This document shows, piece by piece, positions 5,400-38,465 of a DNA stretch of 64,000 nt. The translations under genes and the position numbers were made by a program. Every line of letters begins with the position of its first letter. Within the stretch, counting starts at the first letter, position 1. The notes below the pieces were generated by a model. That model was not told the origin of the DNA. It was given only the letters and a program-made list of their open reading frames with translations, and did no database searches. This stretch comes from Basidiobolus meristosporus CBS 931.73 (Eukaryota > Fungi > Basidiobolomycota). The stretch lies in NCBI GenBank assembly GCA_002104905.1, contig MCFE01000441.1, positions 1 through 64,000 of the forward strand, written 5' to 3'.

Positions 5400-5645
5400 T
5401 GGAAAGGATTCACTGGGATTTACTGAACGCTGAGTGGAACACACTCAACTTTATCGTATTTAAGTTGGCATCACATGAAATGGTTTCATTGGGTAATCAA
5501 ATGACAGTATCCATCCGTGGTAACCTAGGTAACGGACCCTTGATAGGGCGAATGTGTTTATTATCTTAGTTTAGTAAACTAATGGGTGGATGAGTGAGAA
5601 TCTAATGATTGTAGGCAAGGGAGGAAAGAGAAGGGTGGAGGGAGC

Positions 5646-8600
5646 TTAAGCTTCAATGTTGCGGAAAGCGAAGGATGGCTCACCAGGGATTGAAGCCTCA
5701 GCAGCCTTCTGGTCAGCTTCCTCAATTTGTCCATCAGTGCTGATGATCTCGACCTCATCGAATCCAAGGCACTTCTTAAGGTAGGTCTGAACCGAGGTCA
5801 AGGTGTCAAATTCCTTGAACAACAGAGTACGATTGAATGCTTGGGGACCAAAGGCCAGGACTCTCTTCTTGATCTCCTGGATGAATGGCATCATCTTCTT
5901 GTCCTTGAGCAAACCTTGCTTGGCCAAGGTTTGCTTGACCATAGCATCATCGACACTGGCAGTCTCGGTGTTGTAAGCCTCTTGGAGGATCGAGATGCCG
6001 GCGTCTTGCCACTCGGGGAACTTGGAGGCAACGAAGATCTTGAGAAGCTTTGGCTTGGTGGGATCGTAGGTGTCGGCGTTCTTACCCTTCTTACCCTTCT
6101 TCTTGTTGAGGGCGATCTCATTGTCACGGACGGTCTTGATGAGTTTACGGACATACTCGGCAGCCATGAGGACGGGCTCGTCGTTCTCCGCAGGAACCTC
6201 TGGCCACAATGACTCGACAATGGGTTGGGGTTTCTTCAAGACGTCGGTCCAGATGTATTCAGACCAATGGGGAGTGATGGGGGAGAGAAGGAGAGTTTGA
6301 AGCTCGATGAATCTCATGACGAGATCGTGGTGCATACCCTCGCTGGCGGTGGCCTCACGATACCAATCACGAGCGGTTTGGAACTCGTAGAAGCCGTTCT
6401 TCAAGGCCTCACGGAACAACATGTTGGAGTAGGCAGCATCAGTGAGATTAACAAGCTTGTTCATCTCAGCCAAGAAGACACGATCATGGAAGGAGTCCAT
6501 AGGTCCGGTGCGGAGCTCGCCAGCCTTGGCAACGACTTCCTCAATCCACTCCATCAATGTGTGGAGTCTCAAGATAGCGGCGTTAGCGGTAGCCTCCTCG
6601 AAGTTGGCGTCTTCTACACTGTCACCAGCATCAGCCAAGGCAAGACGAGTGGCATCGGCACCGAATTTTTCCAGAGCATCGCTCAAAGTAAGGAAGTTAC
6701 CAGTACTCTTGGACATCTTCTCTCTGTTCAACAACAAATGGCCGTTAGCTCTGATACCCTTGGGCCAGTTGTGCTTGGGGAAGATGGCAACGTGGTTGTA
6801 AATAGCGAAGGTAAGATGGTTGGGAACAAGATCCTTGCCGGAAACACGGACATCCAAAGGATAGAAGTAGTCAAATTCACGCTTCAATGCCTTCAAGGTC
6901 AGCTCGGGGATTTCGGTGTCGGTGGGCATGGGGGCATCACAGAAGAGGTAATCCCAGACAGAGTCGGTCAATTGCTCAGGACGGATTTGGGCAGGACCAA
7001 GCTCAGTGCCTCGGAGGGATCCATTATGCAACATCTGAGCCACTGTGTAGTAGGCCATGTAGATGGTCGAGTCGGAGAGAGATTCGATCAAAAATTGCTC
7101 ATCCCAAGGAAGCTTAGAACCAAGACCGAATGAACGAGCACAAGCCCATTTGTTGAGCCAGTCAAGAGTCTTCTCGAATTGGTTACGGGTTTCCTCGCAG
7201 TAGGTGTTCATTTTGCTGACACACTCTTCGGCTTGAGCCTTCCAGGCCTCCTCTCCGTAGTCCAGATACCACTGGTCGCACAAGTTCACGACACACTCGT
7301 CGCCAGAGCGAGAAATGACCAGACCCTCGGGTTCGTTATAGACGAAGCCTTCGTTTTGAGCAACGAGGTAATCTCTGATAAGTGGCTTGGCTTGTTGGAC
7401 GGTGCGGCCTTTGTATTCACCAATCAACATAACGCCGCTATAGAAACCTTCCTTGTAAGCAATCTCCTTGGCCTCGGCAAGCTGGACCTTGTCCTTTTGG
7501 CTGTTGATCTTCTTTTGCTTACAGATGGTGGGGGCACACAAGTTACCGAAGTTGGGGGTTTCGATGATGGGCACGGGTTCGAAGGTCTCGACCCAAGAAG
7601 GCTCGATCTTATAATAAGCAGGCTTCTTGATGAGATCTTGCAGAGTGGCGTAGTCGTCAGGGGAGTCGGATGGGACGGAGGTTACGACACCAGTACCCTT
7701 GGTGGCCAAGACATTCTCCATTGGAAGAACATACACATGATCGTAAACAGACAAAGGAGCCTTGACCTTGGTGCCGACCAATTGCTCGCCCTTAATGGAG
7801 CCGAGTTTAACGTGGACGCCCTCCTGCTTGGAGAAGCCTTGGAAGCACATGTTACGAGCGGCGCGTTCAGTCACAACAAAGACATCGGTGTCGTTCACTT
7901 CGAAGAAACCGTACTCAAGTTCGGTACCAACAAAGCAGTTAGTCTGGCCGTACATGGTCTCGGGTCTCAAGGTAGCAGCAACCAAGAAGATGTTCTTGCC
8001 CTCCAAAGCAGGGTTAGACTTGATATACTCCTTGGCGTTGTCTCCGAATTCAACAACACGCATCTTGATACCAGTGTACTCTTGTGGGCCAACACCCTCA
8101 CCACTAGCACGGTCGTGGTCCATACAGGGCTGTCCATCCAATGGAGAGTAAATGGTGTAGCGCTTGCCAAACTTGACCTTTTGGAGCTCCTTGAGCTTTC
8201 TGAATTGCCATCTGGCGAAGGAGTCATAGAATGGATTGGCATCGGTGGTAAGGAAGGAACGACGCCAGTCAACCTTACAACCCAAAGCCTTGATGTCCTG
8301 GATAGCCAAAGGTGGGAAGTAAGAGAGCCAGTGCATAGGATCGGCGAATTTGGCAATCTCCTCGTTGGGAACGCCGTTGGATCTCATGATTTGATGCTGG
8401 TATTTGGCACCGGTAGACTTAGCAGCCACCTTTCCGGGCTGTGTTCAGAATATCGGGGTTAAACTAAGGGGCGAGAACTATGCTTATGTCCGAGTAAACG
8501 TACCTTCTTGACAACCTTCTCATCCTTCAAGGAAAGGTTTTGGACGTCGTTTTCTATTTCTTCAAGCTCAAAATTAGCACTTGGATCAGGGAATGAAAAG

Positions 8601-32221: not shown

Positions 32222-35200
32222 ATGTCGACCTCACAGCCTCCTACTAATCCGAATACAGAGAGCCTTGGAATGCTTGTCGACCCAGCTTACGAGCGAACTT
32301 TGCAAAATCGTGTTAAAGATTTACTCGGCTGGCGACATGATAAGTAGGTTTTTTCCTTTTGGCTCAAGACAGAGTCGGTTTTCTCAACTTTCTTGCTGGA
32401 AACAGTTTCCCTGGCAGTCAAGCATCTTACTTCGAAACTGCTCACCTAGAATATCTTAAAAGCGAAGATTACTTCGTATGTGAGCAAAACGACGGAATTC
32501 GTTGTCTTTTATTTACAACAATCACACCCAAGGGCCCTGCTACCTTTGTGGTAAGTCCAAAGCCAAACTATACTTCATTATTGTCATCAATCGTCCAATT
32601 GGAATTCATTTCTTTATTCCTCCGAAGATCGATAGCAAGAATAGTTTCAGGTATTTGTCTGCAGGCTTGCCTGTCAGAGATCAGCCCACTTTTCAGCATG
32701 AAACTTTATTAGATGGGGAACTGGTGATTGAAAAATCTGGTGATCAGGTTTGCCGTATATTCATTCTCCTTGTTACCATATTTTTATTCACCTTGTCTTG
32801 TTATCTAGAAGCTCTACCGATACCTCATTTGTGATCTAATAGTCCTCAATAAGGTTTTAGTTGCGCACAAATCTTTCAACAACAGGCTTGGGGTATATCT
32901 ACATTATGCTCTTCTATTTTAATTATATACTAATATTATCGAAAAGATGCTCAACCAAGAGGTGATACTCCCCTTCAATCGGATGATAAGTAACGACCCA
33001 AGTAAACGGCCACCATTCAAGTGAGAAGATCAACCTCGAGCATTTTTAATGTGCAAGTTCTGATTTCCATTTTGATTAGACTGGAGCTAAAGAAGATGGA
33101 GCGATCATATGGCCTCAAGGTTGTATTAGAGCACAAAAATAATGGGCTTCTGTTCACACCAGTTCGATCTCCATATACTTGTGGTCTGTCTCGGAAGCTG
33201 TGAGTATACCTACAAGGAGATAATGCGCCAATGACCCGTACTAATCAGATGTCCTATTAAAGTCTCAAGTGGAAAAACCCTCTATCTTACACGGCAGATC
33301 TCAAAATCAAAGTGACATACAACGTTGACCGGAAGCCAATTTATTCAGTATTAGCGACGTGTAATTTGAATCACAAATTCTTGGATCACTTGCAGCTTGA
33401 ACCTAGCTTGTTCACTGAGTATGTCACATGTTCTTATATATTAATGTTGATGTATTCATATTGATAATGTTTAGATGGCGCTCCTCACCTCCAGATGGAC
33501 GGATCGCAGAGTTTAGGTATGACTCGACGTTACTTGCGTACATAACTTTCATTTGATGCTTACATATGAATGTAATGTTAATTTAGGTGGGACTCACAAT
33601 GGCCAGTGACTATTTTTGAGAAGGGCTACGCACCAAAAACTCAGAAAGGCGGTTGGAGGTAATACCTCATGGGTATAATGCGAGTTTAGGTCATTAACCC
33701 GATTCTAGATTTGTCCGTTTCCGAGACGACAAAGATACTGCGAACGAGGAGGAATTCGCCAAATTGGTTAGAGAAGGGATGCCAAACGCCGTACCAAGAG
33801 ACGTGGTTTGTATAAAGATAGCATAAGCTTTTTTGAAATGATACTAAACGGAAAACGTCAAAAGCTCGAAAAACAGGTCGAGGAGATCCGTAGTAATTGG
33901 AAAATCCGCGAAAAATCTGGTATGCATCCGCCTAGCGGGCAGAGTGGAAGTTCGCACAGCCAACAAGCTTTACACGGATCCCACGAACGACGCCCTTCTT
34001 CAGATATTCCTGGTAACATTCCAAGAGAGTCCCCCTTACCTTCACCTCGACACGATCAGGGATTCAATCGTAGAAAAGGTTCTCATGATTCATCGCGAAA
34101 AGGATCTCAAGACTCGGTCAGTCGAAAAGGTTCACAAGACGAAACGGCTAAGAAAAGCTCGCCTCCTGAGGATCTTAATACTGGTGACAATGTAGCCCCA
34201 TCGGGCTCTTCAGGCATCCCACCGGAGTCTCTAAAGCCAGAGAAATCTCCTACCAAACTTGTATTTCCCACATCTACGGAAGTTTCTCATACGCAAAGTG
34301 AGACCAAAAGCCCTAACGACGTCCAATTAGATCAACCAAGCGCTGATCTTCCGCCACAGCAAGGTGAAAAATCTTCTCAGTTGCTGCCTAAAGCTCCAAC
34401 ACCCGGTTCAGAAGCTCATTTGGAAGAGCAAAACGAGAAAGAATCATCGACTCTAGCCACTGATATTGTAACCCAAAATCCAGATACGAATGCTACGATA
34501 CAGCAAAGTCAAGATGCCGAGGTTACGAAAAAACCATCATCACCTGAAGTAAGTACGCAATTCTGTGCGCATAATCTTGCATACAATCATTTAAAGCGTA
34601 TTTTTTTTTAAATTTAAGCCATCCGCGTCCAATTCTGAGGTTGTTCCGCCACAGGGCATTAGTAAAAAAGAGGACGAGGCAATAATTCAAAGTTCTGACG
34701 ACAAAGAGCTTAAGCCTGCCAAAATTGAGGATGATTCGTCCCCTCAACTTCAATCCGATTCAGTCTTGAAGCCGACTGAGAGCAATACGCTGGGTAAAGA
34801 CAACTCTAGCCAGGAAGTTGCATCAAATGACAAGTAAGTTGCCGAACATTCTTATACAACATTCTTTTTGGATTCATATATTTATTAACCCATTGCAGAC
34901 AACTAGCCCCTTTGGTAGTACGGCCCGAGAGTTCTGATAGCGTCACTGCACCTACAAAGGTGCAAAACCTAAATGCAGAGTCTACAGCTGTTGTTGAGAC
35001 TATTTCAGCTACTGCGGAGAAAGATGCTTTCGAGGTGCTAGCAAGCAATCCAGAGCATCTTAAAGCCGTCCACGCAGTCGAGGCAAACGGTAATAATCAC
35101 TTACCTGAAGTTACAGGTATTGCCGTTAAAAGGAAAAGCCTGGGAAACGAGAATCAGAATGAGCCACAAAAGTAATTGCCCATGAGATGATGCACAAGTA

Positions 35201-37119
35201 TTGTAATTGTTTTTAACTTTAACCCCAATAGGCATAAGAAATTATCTATCGATTCATCTCCTATTCAACGGGAACATACTAAGCAACAGCTGCAAAAAGA
35301 TCCTGATCAGCGAAAGCAACAGTCTTCAGCAACATCTCTTTACCAAAGCCCTATGTTCCAGCCGCAATTACAACCGATGAACCAAACGCAAATACAGCAG
35401 AATCAACAACCCAAAATTATACCAAATCAAAAGCAAGATCCAATGTCAGATCCACATCATGGTTTCAGTAGAGTCGAGCCAGCAAAGATGGCGCAGTCGC
35501 CCAATCAGCGACCCGTAAGTTCTGCCGATACTCCAAGCACCAACACTCGTATTTTTTCGGGACCACAAATTCTTTCATCGCGCGATCATGGCACCAAGAG
35601 TGAAGCTAATGTTGTTTCTGTTCAACCTGTTCATGAACAGACCTCGGCTACTACAATTCCCCCGACTAAATCTGCTGTTTCATACGATACTCGCATTCAC
35701 GGTGCCTCGCCAAATCTCTCAAGCCGCCCTTCGGTGGAAGCTCATTCTGGATCTGCCCCAGTACAAGATCCGTCGAGTCGTCGCGCATCAAGTGGAAATG
35801 AGACGTCGCTTCTAGACAGATTGTATAGAGTAGAGCCGTTACCTACCTCGCAAACGAACACTCAGAGTATTTCACATTCCGTGTCTAACCCCGATGCTGC
35901 CCGATTGACTAGGGGTGTTCCAGGAACAGCTCAGCCTATACAAACTGACCAGCCACAAAAGTCTCCACATCAATATTTCTCGAGTCCAAGTCATCCCAGC
36001 TTCCAGCCTGGTGCAAACCTGAAATCAAATGAGCATCAAATCCGTAGAGACTCTGCATCAAACCCCGCATCTTTTGATCGGAATAGCAGCACGGGATACA
36101 CACACCATCCAATTCCTAATTCACAAATCAATCCAATGCAGCCGACCTCAGATGTTCCGCAGGTTACTCCACAGTTGGGATACAATACTCCTAAAGAATT
36201 CCAGAGAGGCTCTCCTCGATATGGTGCAGGTTATGTTGCAAATGACAAGCAACCTCGACACTCGATATCGGACATCCAACATCACCCAGTTCATTCTAAA
36301 GGAGCTATAAACAACGACAACAGAGAGGCCTTGCGCCGATCGATGACATTTCCAAATATCCCAGGTGGATTGAAAAACGACACTTTCAATGCCAGTCCAA
36401 CCGCCGCAAATCAACAATATGGGAAGCAGAGTATTAATATGCATCCGGGTGAAGCGCACGAACGTGATAGCCGAGGATATAGGCCGCCGGTGGATGTCCC
36501 AGCCAGGCCATCACAGTATACTCCAATGATGGATTCTAATTCGCAAGCGTTAGGGAATAGATCACCGAGCCTTCTTCATCAAAACCCACTACCTGGCTAT
36601 CCTCAACGAACTATGGCCGGTCGTTCACAAACAGTGCCCCAAAGCGCCCGTCCCCCAACTCAGCCATCTGGAATACAACATGTTAGCCAATCTAGTGCTT
36701 CTTCACAGTACCCTCCACCGTATGACCAAGCGGAGATACAACGGAGACCACCCGCCCATTCAATGATGGCAATGCCCGGACAGTACTCGGTGTCAGCGTC
36801 GAAGTCACCCGGTTATAGACACTCCATTCCACATTCTCCTGGAGCCTCTGTTCAGAATTCACCTCAATTGGTGCCCACTAGGCAGGAAAATTGGCAGCCT
36901 ATGAAGGATGTTAGTATTGCAGCAGGATATCCCCATCAATCGAACCCACAATGGCCGGGAACGCAATATCCTTATCATCCATCCGTACCAGTGTATAACT
37001 CGCAACCAATTCATTCTACCCCCTCGCAACCACGAAGCCGAACGCAGTCCAAAGGAAAGCTAGATTTTATAATGAATTCTTCGGAAGAGGAGCCAGATTG
37101 GAGAAACACCCGACTATAA
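32222..37119 (+). CDS. mRNA-capping guanylyltransferase (Ceg1)-like domain with degenerate active site, fused to a very long S/P/Q-rich disordered tail; multi-exon
   Basis: FPGSQ, motif I position reads EQNDG, TLLDGELV, motif IV position reads KNNGLLF, LKWK, OB fold GGWR|FVRFRDDK..N, EIRSNWKIRE. Exons continue in frame to ...KGKLDFIMNSSEEEPDWRNTRL. Confidence 0.8.
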
Positions 37120-37518
37120 CTTGTTTGGTCATAAGTATGGCGGATCATATTATAATATTGTGAAAGGAATTTTGTACTTTTATGTAGCCTTCCTCATTCT
37201 TTCTCCAGCTGATTTTGTTCATTTAATTTCTCTCATTTTTGTTTTGAATTTCATTGCATCGGTCGCAGTTGTTAGTTTCTGATACACCCCATGTTAAATA
37301 GAATAGTTATGCCTTTTAGTGTGAAATAGCCCAGCATAACTTATCCTCTCAAGAGTGCGCAGTTTTTGTATAAAAGAGCAAAAGGAGAAATTTCACCGAG
37401 CAGAAGCAAACATTCATTGGAAATTAAATTAGAAGGCAAAAGATAGTCAACACCCGCACTTTTCAGAGACCATTGTCGGTAGTGCGAGATGACGCTTGCC
37501 ACGGCGCTTTTTACTTTA

Positions 37519-38465
37519 TCAAACACAAGGGTTTACTTCACCGGGTGCATCATCCCCTGAACTGACGCTTTGGATATCGAAATTGTTCCAAGCGAATACT
37601 GCGCCCAACCAGTCTATTGACGGCGTAGTAGGTCGCCTGGATGGGATCGTGTCCGATGGCAGCGTCGGAAAGTACTTTCCCATCCACTCTGCGATCAGCT
37701 GCACTCTTATCGATCAGAGAGACGCTGGCGGTGGAAAGGATATCACGACACTCTTTACCCTGTAGGTCTCGATCGCATCCTGGCTTAGACTCTGGTCACT
37801 AGCAAGTGCCAAAAGATCGCGTTCGGTGATCAGCTTTTTGGTGTCCGTAAGCTTCTTGAAGCTGGTGAAGAAGGTTTGAAATTCGGGGTCGTTGAGCACG
37901 ATTGCAAGTTCATGAAGTTTGTATTTGAGCGCATTGCGCCCCGAATGTTTGCCTAGCACCAGATTGTTCGATGGGACGTCTACAAGCTCAGGGGTGCTGA
38001 TCTCGTAGGTTCTCTTGTTTTTCGGTACTCCGTCTTGGTGGATCCCCGATTCGTGGGCGAATGCGCTCAAACCGACGATGGCCTTGTTCGCTTGACTAGG
38101 CATCCCGCTTTTTAATACCACCAGTTGGGAAACACGATATTGAAAGGTGGTGTCGATCTTGTTGAACACTGGATAGCTATTTGGGCGGGTGCGGAGCGCC
38201 ATCACAACTTCTTCCAGAGAAGTGTTCCCTGCACACTCTCCAATCCTATAGATCGTCAATTCCACTTGACGGACCCCATTGGAGATGGCAGCCAGTGTAT
38301 TGGCCGTAGCCAAACCTGGATCGTTCTGGTAATGTGCAGACCAGACGACCTTTTCGGATCCTCGAGTGTTTTCTCTTGGATAGTTGAAGAGCGCGCTATA
38401 CTCCTCCTCTGGAACACAGATGCCGACCGTATCAGGGATATTCAATGTGGCGGCTCCCGCCTTTC
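37519..38465 (-). pseudogene. leuA: 5'-truncated, frameshifted 2-isopropylmalate synthase (leuA-type) pseudogene
   Basis: KAGAATLNIPDTVG, HYQNDPG, IGECAGNTSLEEV, AFAHESGIHQDG, LVLGKHSGRNA. The regulatory domain (DAAIG..PI...VNRLVG; FDIQSVSSG.DA.GEV) is spread over three frames; the N-terminal DRE half is absent. Confidence 0.85.

Follow-up and report, generated by a model that had tools for sequence, protein, structure and literature searches.

A lysine-less relative of the mRNA capping guanylyltransferase in Basidiobolus meristosporus, a probable selected pseudoenzyme from a long-form clade of early-diverging fungi

Guanylyltransferases work through a Lys-GMP adduct formed on the lysine of motif I. 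What, then, can a member of this family be kept for once that lysine has gone? The question is raised by K493DRAFT_340608, a gene of the fungus Basidiobolus meristosporus CBS 931.73 located in the window analysed here (64,000 nucleotides (nt), positions 1 to 64,000 of contig MCFE01000441.1). An earlier reading of the letters alone, called here the sequence-only reading, had proposed it to be a capping enzyme paralogue without its catalytic lysine. Our analysis indicates that K493DRAFT_340608 is probably a pseudo-guanylyltransferase maintained by selection and belonging to a clade of long proteins. To our knowledge, cap addition has been viewed as a one-enzyme and strictly catalytic step, and no form of the guanylyltransferase fold other than the essential Ceg1/Pce1 is known in the yeasts studied.

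Exact protein-to-genome mapping placed the product of K493DRAFT_340608, a protein of 1363 amino acids (aa) with the public name 'hypothetical protein' (P0001), on 14 exons at 32222-37116 of the forward strand:

32222-37119, forward strand: whole gene K493DRAFT_340608, with the stop codon TAA at 37117-37119; the exon chain reproduces P0001 exactly.
32222-32343, 32406-32550, 32628-32747, 32809-32892 and 32947-33020, forward strand: exons 1 to 5, by exact mapping.
33080-33199, 33263-33418, 33475-33516, 33587-33658 and 33709-33805, forward strand: exons 6 to 10, by exact mapping.
33865-34548, 34619-34833, 34899-35171 and 35232-37116, forward strand: exons 11 to 14, by exact mapping.

P0001 was recovered at 100% when exon 2 (32407-32550) was searched against 1.8 billion representative sequences, and joining of the exons at GT-AG borders gave a clean open frame whose 644 aa are the start of the public model. 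The sequence-only reading had ended the gene at 33920, which is wrong: the gene runs approximately 3.2 kb further, and 33920 bounds only the folded domain. No further copy of K493DRAFT_340608 was found inside the window.

The folded part of the protein carries the following features:

32222-33942, forward strand: nucleotidyltransferase (NTase) and OB domain, aa 1-370 (exons 1-10, running into exon 11), from Pfam, AlphaFold2 and Foldseek.
32476-32502, forward strand: motif I, VCEQNDGIR, in which Gln68 (CAA, 32485-32487) replaces the Lys nucleophile.
32634-32636, forward strand: Ser92, at the place of an invariant Arg of canonical enzymes (the column of Pce1 domain-index R91).
32706-32726, forward strand: motif III, LLDGELV, intact in the alignment.
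32821-32844, forward strand: motif IIIa, YLICDLIV, in which Cys137 (32830-32832) replaces an invariant Phe.
33126-33134, forward strand: deletion of 6-7 residues (..VVL/EH..) adjoining motif IV upstream, from the alignment.
33135-33155, forward strand: motif IV, KNNGLLF, in which Asn203 (AAT, 33141-33143) replaces an invariant Asp.
33198-33281, forward strand: motif V, LLKWKNP, intact in the alignment and split by intron 6.
33618-33653, forward strand: OB-fold insertion EKGYAPKTQKGG, present in the long family only, from the clade-signature columns.
33654-33745, forward strand: motif VI, WRFVRFRDDKDTAN, intact in the alignment (RFRDDK) and split by intron 9.

In the first 400 aa Pfam recognised PF01331 (122 bits) and PF03919 (39 bits), both over cut-off. 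The AlphaFold2 model, built on a 58-sequence alignment, had a mean pLDDT of 87.8 and a pTM of 0.82. Foldseek searches of the PDB with it returned capping enzymes as all 19 best matches, with Schizosaccharomyces pombe Pce1 (4pz6_A) first (E 8.8e-32), followed by 1p16, 3kyh, 3s24 and 1ckm. The three methods agree with the sequence-only reading that the whole guanylyltransferase and OB fold is present, and in the predicted structure the NTase and OB fold of K493DRAFT_340608 is complete.

The catalytic site is another matter. The departures described in the sequence-only reading were all read again in the gene model: EQNDG in motif I, with CAA at 32485-32487; NNGLLF at 33141 in motif IV; FPGSQASYF instead of FPGSQPVSF upstream of motif I; and a short deletion before motif IV, which is found in both Basidiobolus long proteins and in none of the 16 other sequences displayed in the alignment block. 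In phmmer searches against PDB sequences, Gln68 was paired with the Lys that is catalytic in Pce1 (4pz6), Cgt1 (1p16) and Ceg1 (3kyh). Erosion of the GTP site goes beyond what had been noted, with Arg>Ser92 and Phe>Cys137. The column of Ser92 holds Arg in 100% of the canonical clade (S) and in 89% of the other members of the long clade (L), and Ser in both Basidiobolus species; that of Cys137 holds Phe in 100% of S and in 95% of the other L members. Altogether, canonical enzymes have 48 positions with an invariance of at least 95%, and 13 of them are altered in Basidiobolus, including K68Q, Arg>Ser92, Phe>Cys137 and D203N. We assign to these four residues, from the literature on the PBCV-1 enzyme and Ceg1, the roles of nucleophile, ribose contact, base stacking and motif IV metal/phosphate ligand, respectively. 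Without the lysine there should be no covalent enzyme-GMP intermediate and hence no capping; judged from its sequence, K493DRAFT_340608 is very unlikely to cap RNA.

A trivial explanation would be that the Lys>Gln change is a sequencing or assembly artefact, or that the gene is a decaying duplicate, i.e. a transcribed pseudogene. The loss of several catalytic residues, with the additional loss of Asp70 (D70G) in Basidiobolus ranarum, is what decay might produce. However, the genome run, a spliced transcript contig and relatives all show the CAA codon. A source-like run (X1) was identical to the window sequence, and a run from another sample of the same study (X3) contained a 2096-nt contig that matched the gene with 0 mismatches and skipped the first 11 introns (including 34549-34618) at the predicted GT..AG borders, in line with the intact splicing that had been predicted. 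This contig is transcript-derived, since the 11 introns are missing from it, and it shows that the locus is transcribed. As CAA at 32485-32487 occurs both in the source run and in this independent spliced contig, it is not an assembly error. Introns 1 to 11 are backed by the contig, and introns 12 and 13 rest on the public model and on their conservation in B. ranarum. Run X3 carries the label 'DNA?', yet it holds this intron-less contig.

The glutamine is shared by relatives, as a check proposed with the sequence-only reading had asked. The B. ranarum orthologue (P0225; 1390 aa, 88% identity over the first 400 aa) lies in a locus (L001) collinear with the window and has the same 14-exon structure; its motifs read VCEQNGGIR and KNNGLLF. 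Organism C, represented by two runs and approximately 88% identical, showed no change at 32485-32487 among the first 40 of its 294 differences, those that were listed; it has Q>R in FPGSQ and does not have the exon 2 changes of B. ranarum. It differs from both B. meristosporus and B. ranarum and therefore represents a third lineage that also carries Gln. The catalytic-site changes are fixed in at least two, and probably three, Basidiobolus lineages.

Decay is also hard to reconcile with the divergence between the two species. All 14 exons are open in both, in the presence of saturated introns and synonymous sites (nucleotide identity approximately 80% in exons, with 72-87% in exons 1-10, and 56% in introns). 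In the domain (aa 1-390), non-synonymous divergence (dN) was 0.059, the proportion of synonymous differences (pS) 0.71 and dN/dS (omega) approximately 0.03, far from the neutral value that would have spoken for decay; in the tail, dN was 0.43 and omega approximately 0.22. The canonical capping enzyme CEG1 had a dN of 0.103 in the same species pair, so that the dN of the lysine-less domain is about half that of an essential enzyme. Constraint on the lysine-less domain is tighter than on the true capping enzyme that these two species have. Protein identity was 86-94% over aa 1-350, and 18-64% in the tail, with islands and up to 92% at the extreme C terminus. The domain dN below that of CEG1, the transcript contig and the shared Gln exclude neutral decay and assembly error, and we consider both to be extremely improbable accounts of this gene.

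A canonical enzyme lies elsewhere in the genome. The sequence-only reading had suggested a search for a second, canonical CEG1, and it was recovered on contig MCFE01000090.1 of B. meristosporus by a search that started from P0132, the short protein of B. ranarum: P0269, 364 aa, named 'putative mRNA capping enzyme alpha subunit', with VCEKSDGVR, SDGLIF and all other motifs, and with stronger Pfam scores (170 and 103 bits). Both B. meristosporus and B. ranarum have a canonical CEG1. In each of the two species the public model yields the annotated protein only with an 8-nt micro-exon, which has the same position in both genes (L002 1705-1712 in B. meristosporus and L003 1725-1732 in B. ranarum). 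We also observed a fragment of 198 aa (P0069) that resembles the canonical enzyme of a glomeromycete (P0095 of Funneliformis mosseae) and has CEQSDGTRVLAYIT for its CEKTDG, another Lys>Gln change; it is possibly a pseudogene or a partial model.

Where does the lysine-less protein come from? At 42-51% identity, its closest relatives fall outside the Ceg1 orthologues: these proteins are long (770-2300 aa) and come from Chytridiomycota, Zoopagomycota, Glomeromycota, Mortierellomycota and Mucoromycota, and species with the long form also have a short canonical enzyme. Shorter long-type matches occurred too, some of them flagged as partial in their records; many of the long-clade sequences are automatic gene models, some partial. 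Maximum-likelihood analysis (LG+C20 PMSF, 423 columns, one holozoan outgroup) of 46 domains of the long type and 35 of the canonical type separated the two groups with 100% ultrafast bootstrap, 99% SH-aLRT and in 100% of 200 bootstrap trees. K493DRAFT_340608 fell inside the L clade and outside the Ceg1/Pce1 orthologue clade, and each group roughly tracked fungal phylogeny. A recent duplication of CEG1 was considered as an origin and is ruled out, the gene lying inside the old long clade at 100/99 support. In a quick tree, the long Basidiobolus pair had a stem of 0.75 and tips of 0.07 and 0.06; the corresponding lengths for the canonical pair were 0.39 (stem), 0.16 and 0.13 (tips). Basidiobolus retains 19 of the 20 positions that separate the long clade from canonical enzymes, including the OB insertion. 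The insertion has the form E-x-G-Y-x6-G-G; G301, Y302, G309 and G310 are found in 89-92% of the L members, and almost all S members have gaps there. On these comparisons K493DRAFT_340608 is the Basidiobolus member of an old long-form clade, seen here only in early-diverging fungi, whose architecture is a guanylyltransferase domain, a tail of approximately 400-1800 aa and a C-terminal LDFILN-type motif. There were no Dikarya among the named long-type matches; since a single outgroup was used, we treat both the dating of the duplication and the loss in Dikarya as provisional. NCBI records call many fungal capping guanylyltransferases, long and canonical, 'Dcp1p-Dcp2p decapping enzyme complex alpha subunit', which looks like a propagated misannotation.

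Loss of the catalytic motif recurs in this clade. KxDG was found in 225 of 225 canonical sequences in which motif I could be aligned, and in the long clade the Lys was present in 63 of 72 sequences, with full KxDG in only 39. On the tree this amounts to at least four losses of the Lys and at least seven degenerations of KxDG, compared to none among the 225 canonical enzymes. The lineages are:

Basidiobolus: motif I Lys>Gln, the only named lineage with this change.
Rhizopus microsporus/azygosporus: motif I Lys>Arg.
Spinellus: motif I Lys>Arg.
Hesseltinella and Gongronella: Lys>Arg, with motif I scrambled.
Mortierellomycota: EKVAG, Lys kept and Asp lost.
Dimargaris: EKAIG, Lys kept and Asp lost.
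Cladochytrium: degenerate KxDG.
Absidia glauca (copy a): degenerate KxDG.

Fully scrambled forms of motif I occur in other long-clade lineages (e.g. VCDRNFTAR and VCDRNLAAR), which argues that the chemistry is dispensable for the role retained by the family. The same forms bear on the possibility that K493DRAFT_340608 is still an enzyme, using a relocated Lys nucleophile or a non-covalent reaction in the old cleft, such as hydrolysis of GpppN or of 5'-ppRNA. Such an activity would fit the very high conservation of the domain and the state of motifs III (DGE), V (KWK) and VI (RxRDDK), which line the phosphate side of the cleft and are intact and identical in both species. It is opposed by the loss of four GTP-site residues (K68Q, R>S92, F>C137 and D203N) together with the loop deletion, by the further loss of the motif I Asp in B. 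ranarum, by the lack of any Lys within or adjoining motif I and by the complete scrambling of this motif in other long lineages. We regard a surviving enzymatic activity as most unlikely.

The region downstream of the domain is the other hallmark of the long form:

33943-37047, forward strand: tail of approximately 970 aa (S 14%, P 12%, Q 9%), free of Pfam domains.
37048-37077, forward strand: C-terminal motif SKGKLDFIMN, common to the long family.

Composition and lack of domains suggest that the tail is disordered. It gave no Pfam domain, at E<0.01 its BLAST matches were confined to Basidiobolus, and its last 74 aa gave no match among PDB sequences. Within P0001, LDFIMN occupies aa 1345-1350 of 1363. 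Of 57 long members, 31 had a single occurrence of the pattern [LMW][DEN][FILV][IV][LM][NG], which invariably lay in the last 60 aa; the pattern was present in 0 of 266 canonical-type sequences, with 0.03 tails expected after shuffling. The motif is typically ...KAKLDFILN in Mucorales, KLDFIMN in Basidiobolus, LNFIMN in Dimargaris and WLD(I/V)VMG in chytrids; C termini bearing it include P0015, P0229, P0233, P0234 and P0040. Just past the folded domain, at 34075-34167, there are three RKGS-type repeats (KGSHDSSRKGSQDSVSRKGSQDE), kept in B. ranarum, which look like clustered basophilic-kinase sites in their sequence.

On the 3' side of the gene, a convergent gene at approximately 37774-38406 (reverse strand) resembles an HMGL-like/LeuA-type synthase and has a counterpart beside the B. 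ranarum orthologue. The locus is syntenic, because this gene adjoins the orthologue in both species. Between it and K493DRAFT_340608, a block of approximately 265 nt directly past the stop codon (37135-37400; L001 approximately 5540-5805) is approximately 90-95% identical between B. meristosporus and B. ranarum, compared to 56% for the introns of the gene. This block had no Rfam match and an ordinary folding energy on both strands (z +0.66 and -0.83); it may be an ultra-conserved 3' untranslated region or a regulatory element.

What, then, has selection kept? The fold, the signature surface of the long clade, motifs III, V and VI and the end of the tail are all retained. In an expressed and constrained gene whose catalytic Lys is lost, this suggests that selection maintains a non-catalytic binding function. 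One candidate ligand is the carboxy-terminal domain (CTD) that RNA polymerase II (Pol II) carries; the sequence-only reading had also proposed Spt5, RNA 5' ends and the triphosphatase, and the sole support for any of these binding roles comes from the docking positions given next. In Pce1, the Ser5-phosphorylated CTD is held by R157, G164, H201, R364 and Y368, and the CTD is read differently by each capping enzyme, with docking modes that vary across species (PMC4066402). The corresponding columns of the alignment hold K150, G157, Y192, R353 and K357 in K493DRAFT_340608, identical to the Basidiobolus CEG1 and to the fungal majority, with the reservation that docking modes vary by species; at the level of sequence, this is compatible with retained docking on the phosphorylated CTD.

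Starting from this, the dead guanylyltransferase domain would dock on the Ser5-phosphorylated Pol II CTD or on a similar phospho-ligand, the retained motifs III, V and VI would perhaps hold a 5' phosphate, and the tail with its terminal motif would tether a partner to early transcription complexes. K493DRAFT_340608 could in this way serve as an adaptor or compete with Ceg1. If the protein is a pseudoenzyme, the CTD-adaptor mechanism is the one that we prefer, a tentative proposal which we hold to be possible and somewhat short of probable. A second form of competition would make the protein a decoy or inhibitor, its dead domain vying with Ceg1 for access to the RNA triphosphatase or to Pol II/Spt5 and thereby lowering capping, and its tail serving only regulation or turnover. 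An expressed gene with an intact fold, whose Pce1 CTD-docking positions match those of the resident CEG1, could behave in this manner, and nothing sets a decoy apart from the adaptor model. However, the terminal motif is conserved from chytrids to Mucorales and 19 of the 20 clade positions are kept, including the OB insertion, which points to partners of its own. A pure decoy is, in our opinion, unlikely.

Several points weigh against the adaptor mechanism and the pseudoenzyme on which it builds. CTD docking is deduced from five aligned positions, and conservation of docking positions is weak evidence because capping enzymes each read the CTD differently. Expression is seen in a single assembled contig, not in raw reads, and exons 13 and 14 lie outside it. 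Synonymous sites are saturated (pS 0.71-0.79), which makes the omega values approximate; the comparison of dN with CEG1 is independent of dS. Finally, a nearby Lys could in strict terms still serve as a substitute nucleophile. Nevertheless, the proposal of a pseudo-capping enzyme made in the sequence-only reading held up on the loss of the Lys, the transcription of the locus, the purifying selection and the presence of a canonical CEG1 elsewhere in the genome, and from the first of these we infer the loss of the covalent adduct.

Could the same hold for the whole long-form family? Its members may share a non-catalytic job, in which the protein reads the phosphorylated CTD of Pol II or Spt5, or the RNA 5' end, and recruits a partner; the chemistry would be dispensable and repeatedly lost, and Dikarya would have lost the whole system. 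This generalisation is speculative, and we hold it to be possible but less likely than not. If it is true, no other member of the family is as clean a natural 'K-to-Q mutant' as that of Basidiobolus. A conserved and expressed lysine-less homologue indicates that the guanylyltransferase fold has a selectable function apart from capping. The ancient long-form family makes such a function testable; natural members that look active can be compared with dead ones, which opens the questions of CTD or Spt5 reading, of 5'-end binding and of recruitment through the tail. There is also a consequence for annotation: long forms named 'mRNA guanylyltransferase' would count as capping enzymes in comparative genomics, and the 'Dcp1p-Dcp2p' name is wrong.

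In the literature searched, we found no pseudoenzyme described among covalent nucleotidyltransferases of the capping-enzyme branch, no second guanylyltransferase paralogue in fungi, and nothing on these locus tags, on the long-form proteins or on the terminal motif. What is known already is the fold and the family; what appears to be undescribed is the selected form without the lysine, together with its long-form clade. Compared to Ceg1 of Saccharomyces cerevisiae, Pce1 of S. pombe and Cgt1 of Candida albicans, the NTase and OB fold is alike (Foldseek E from approximately 1e-28 to approximately 1e-31 for 3kyh, 4pz6 and 1p16), motifs III, V and VI are present and the C-terminal helix resembles that of the resident CEG1. 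Unlike these enzymes, the protein has substitutions at the motif I Lys, the motif IV Asp, the invariant Arg and the motif IIIa Phe, has lost a loop, belongs to a separate clade and carries a tail of approximately 970 aa with a terminal LDFIMN. With the other long-form paralogues, such as Calcarisporiella VTP21DRAFT_8868, Spizellomyces SpCBS45565_g05002 and Rhizopus RO3G_08194, which are all annotated automatically, it has in common the clade, the OB insertion, the tail and the C-terminal motif. Many of the other long-form paralogues keep full KxDG and DGLIF and could be active, whereas Basidiobolus does not keep them. Trypanosoma brucei has two capping guanylyltransferases, TbCgm1 and TbCe1, both catalytically active, and offers a precedent for a second protein of the guanylyltransferase family that has a specialised role alongside the main capping enzyme. 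The second copy in Basidiobolus, by contrast, is without the catalytic residues. In concept, the closest likeness is to pseudoenzymes such as pseudokinases, which are homologues of an active family that have lost catalytic residues and are expressed and under purifying selection; K493DRAFT_340608 presents the same combination, with its catalytic residues gone, a spliced transcript contig and a domain omega of approximately 0.03.

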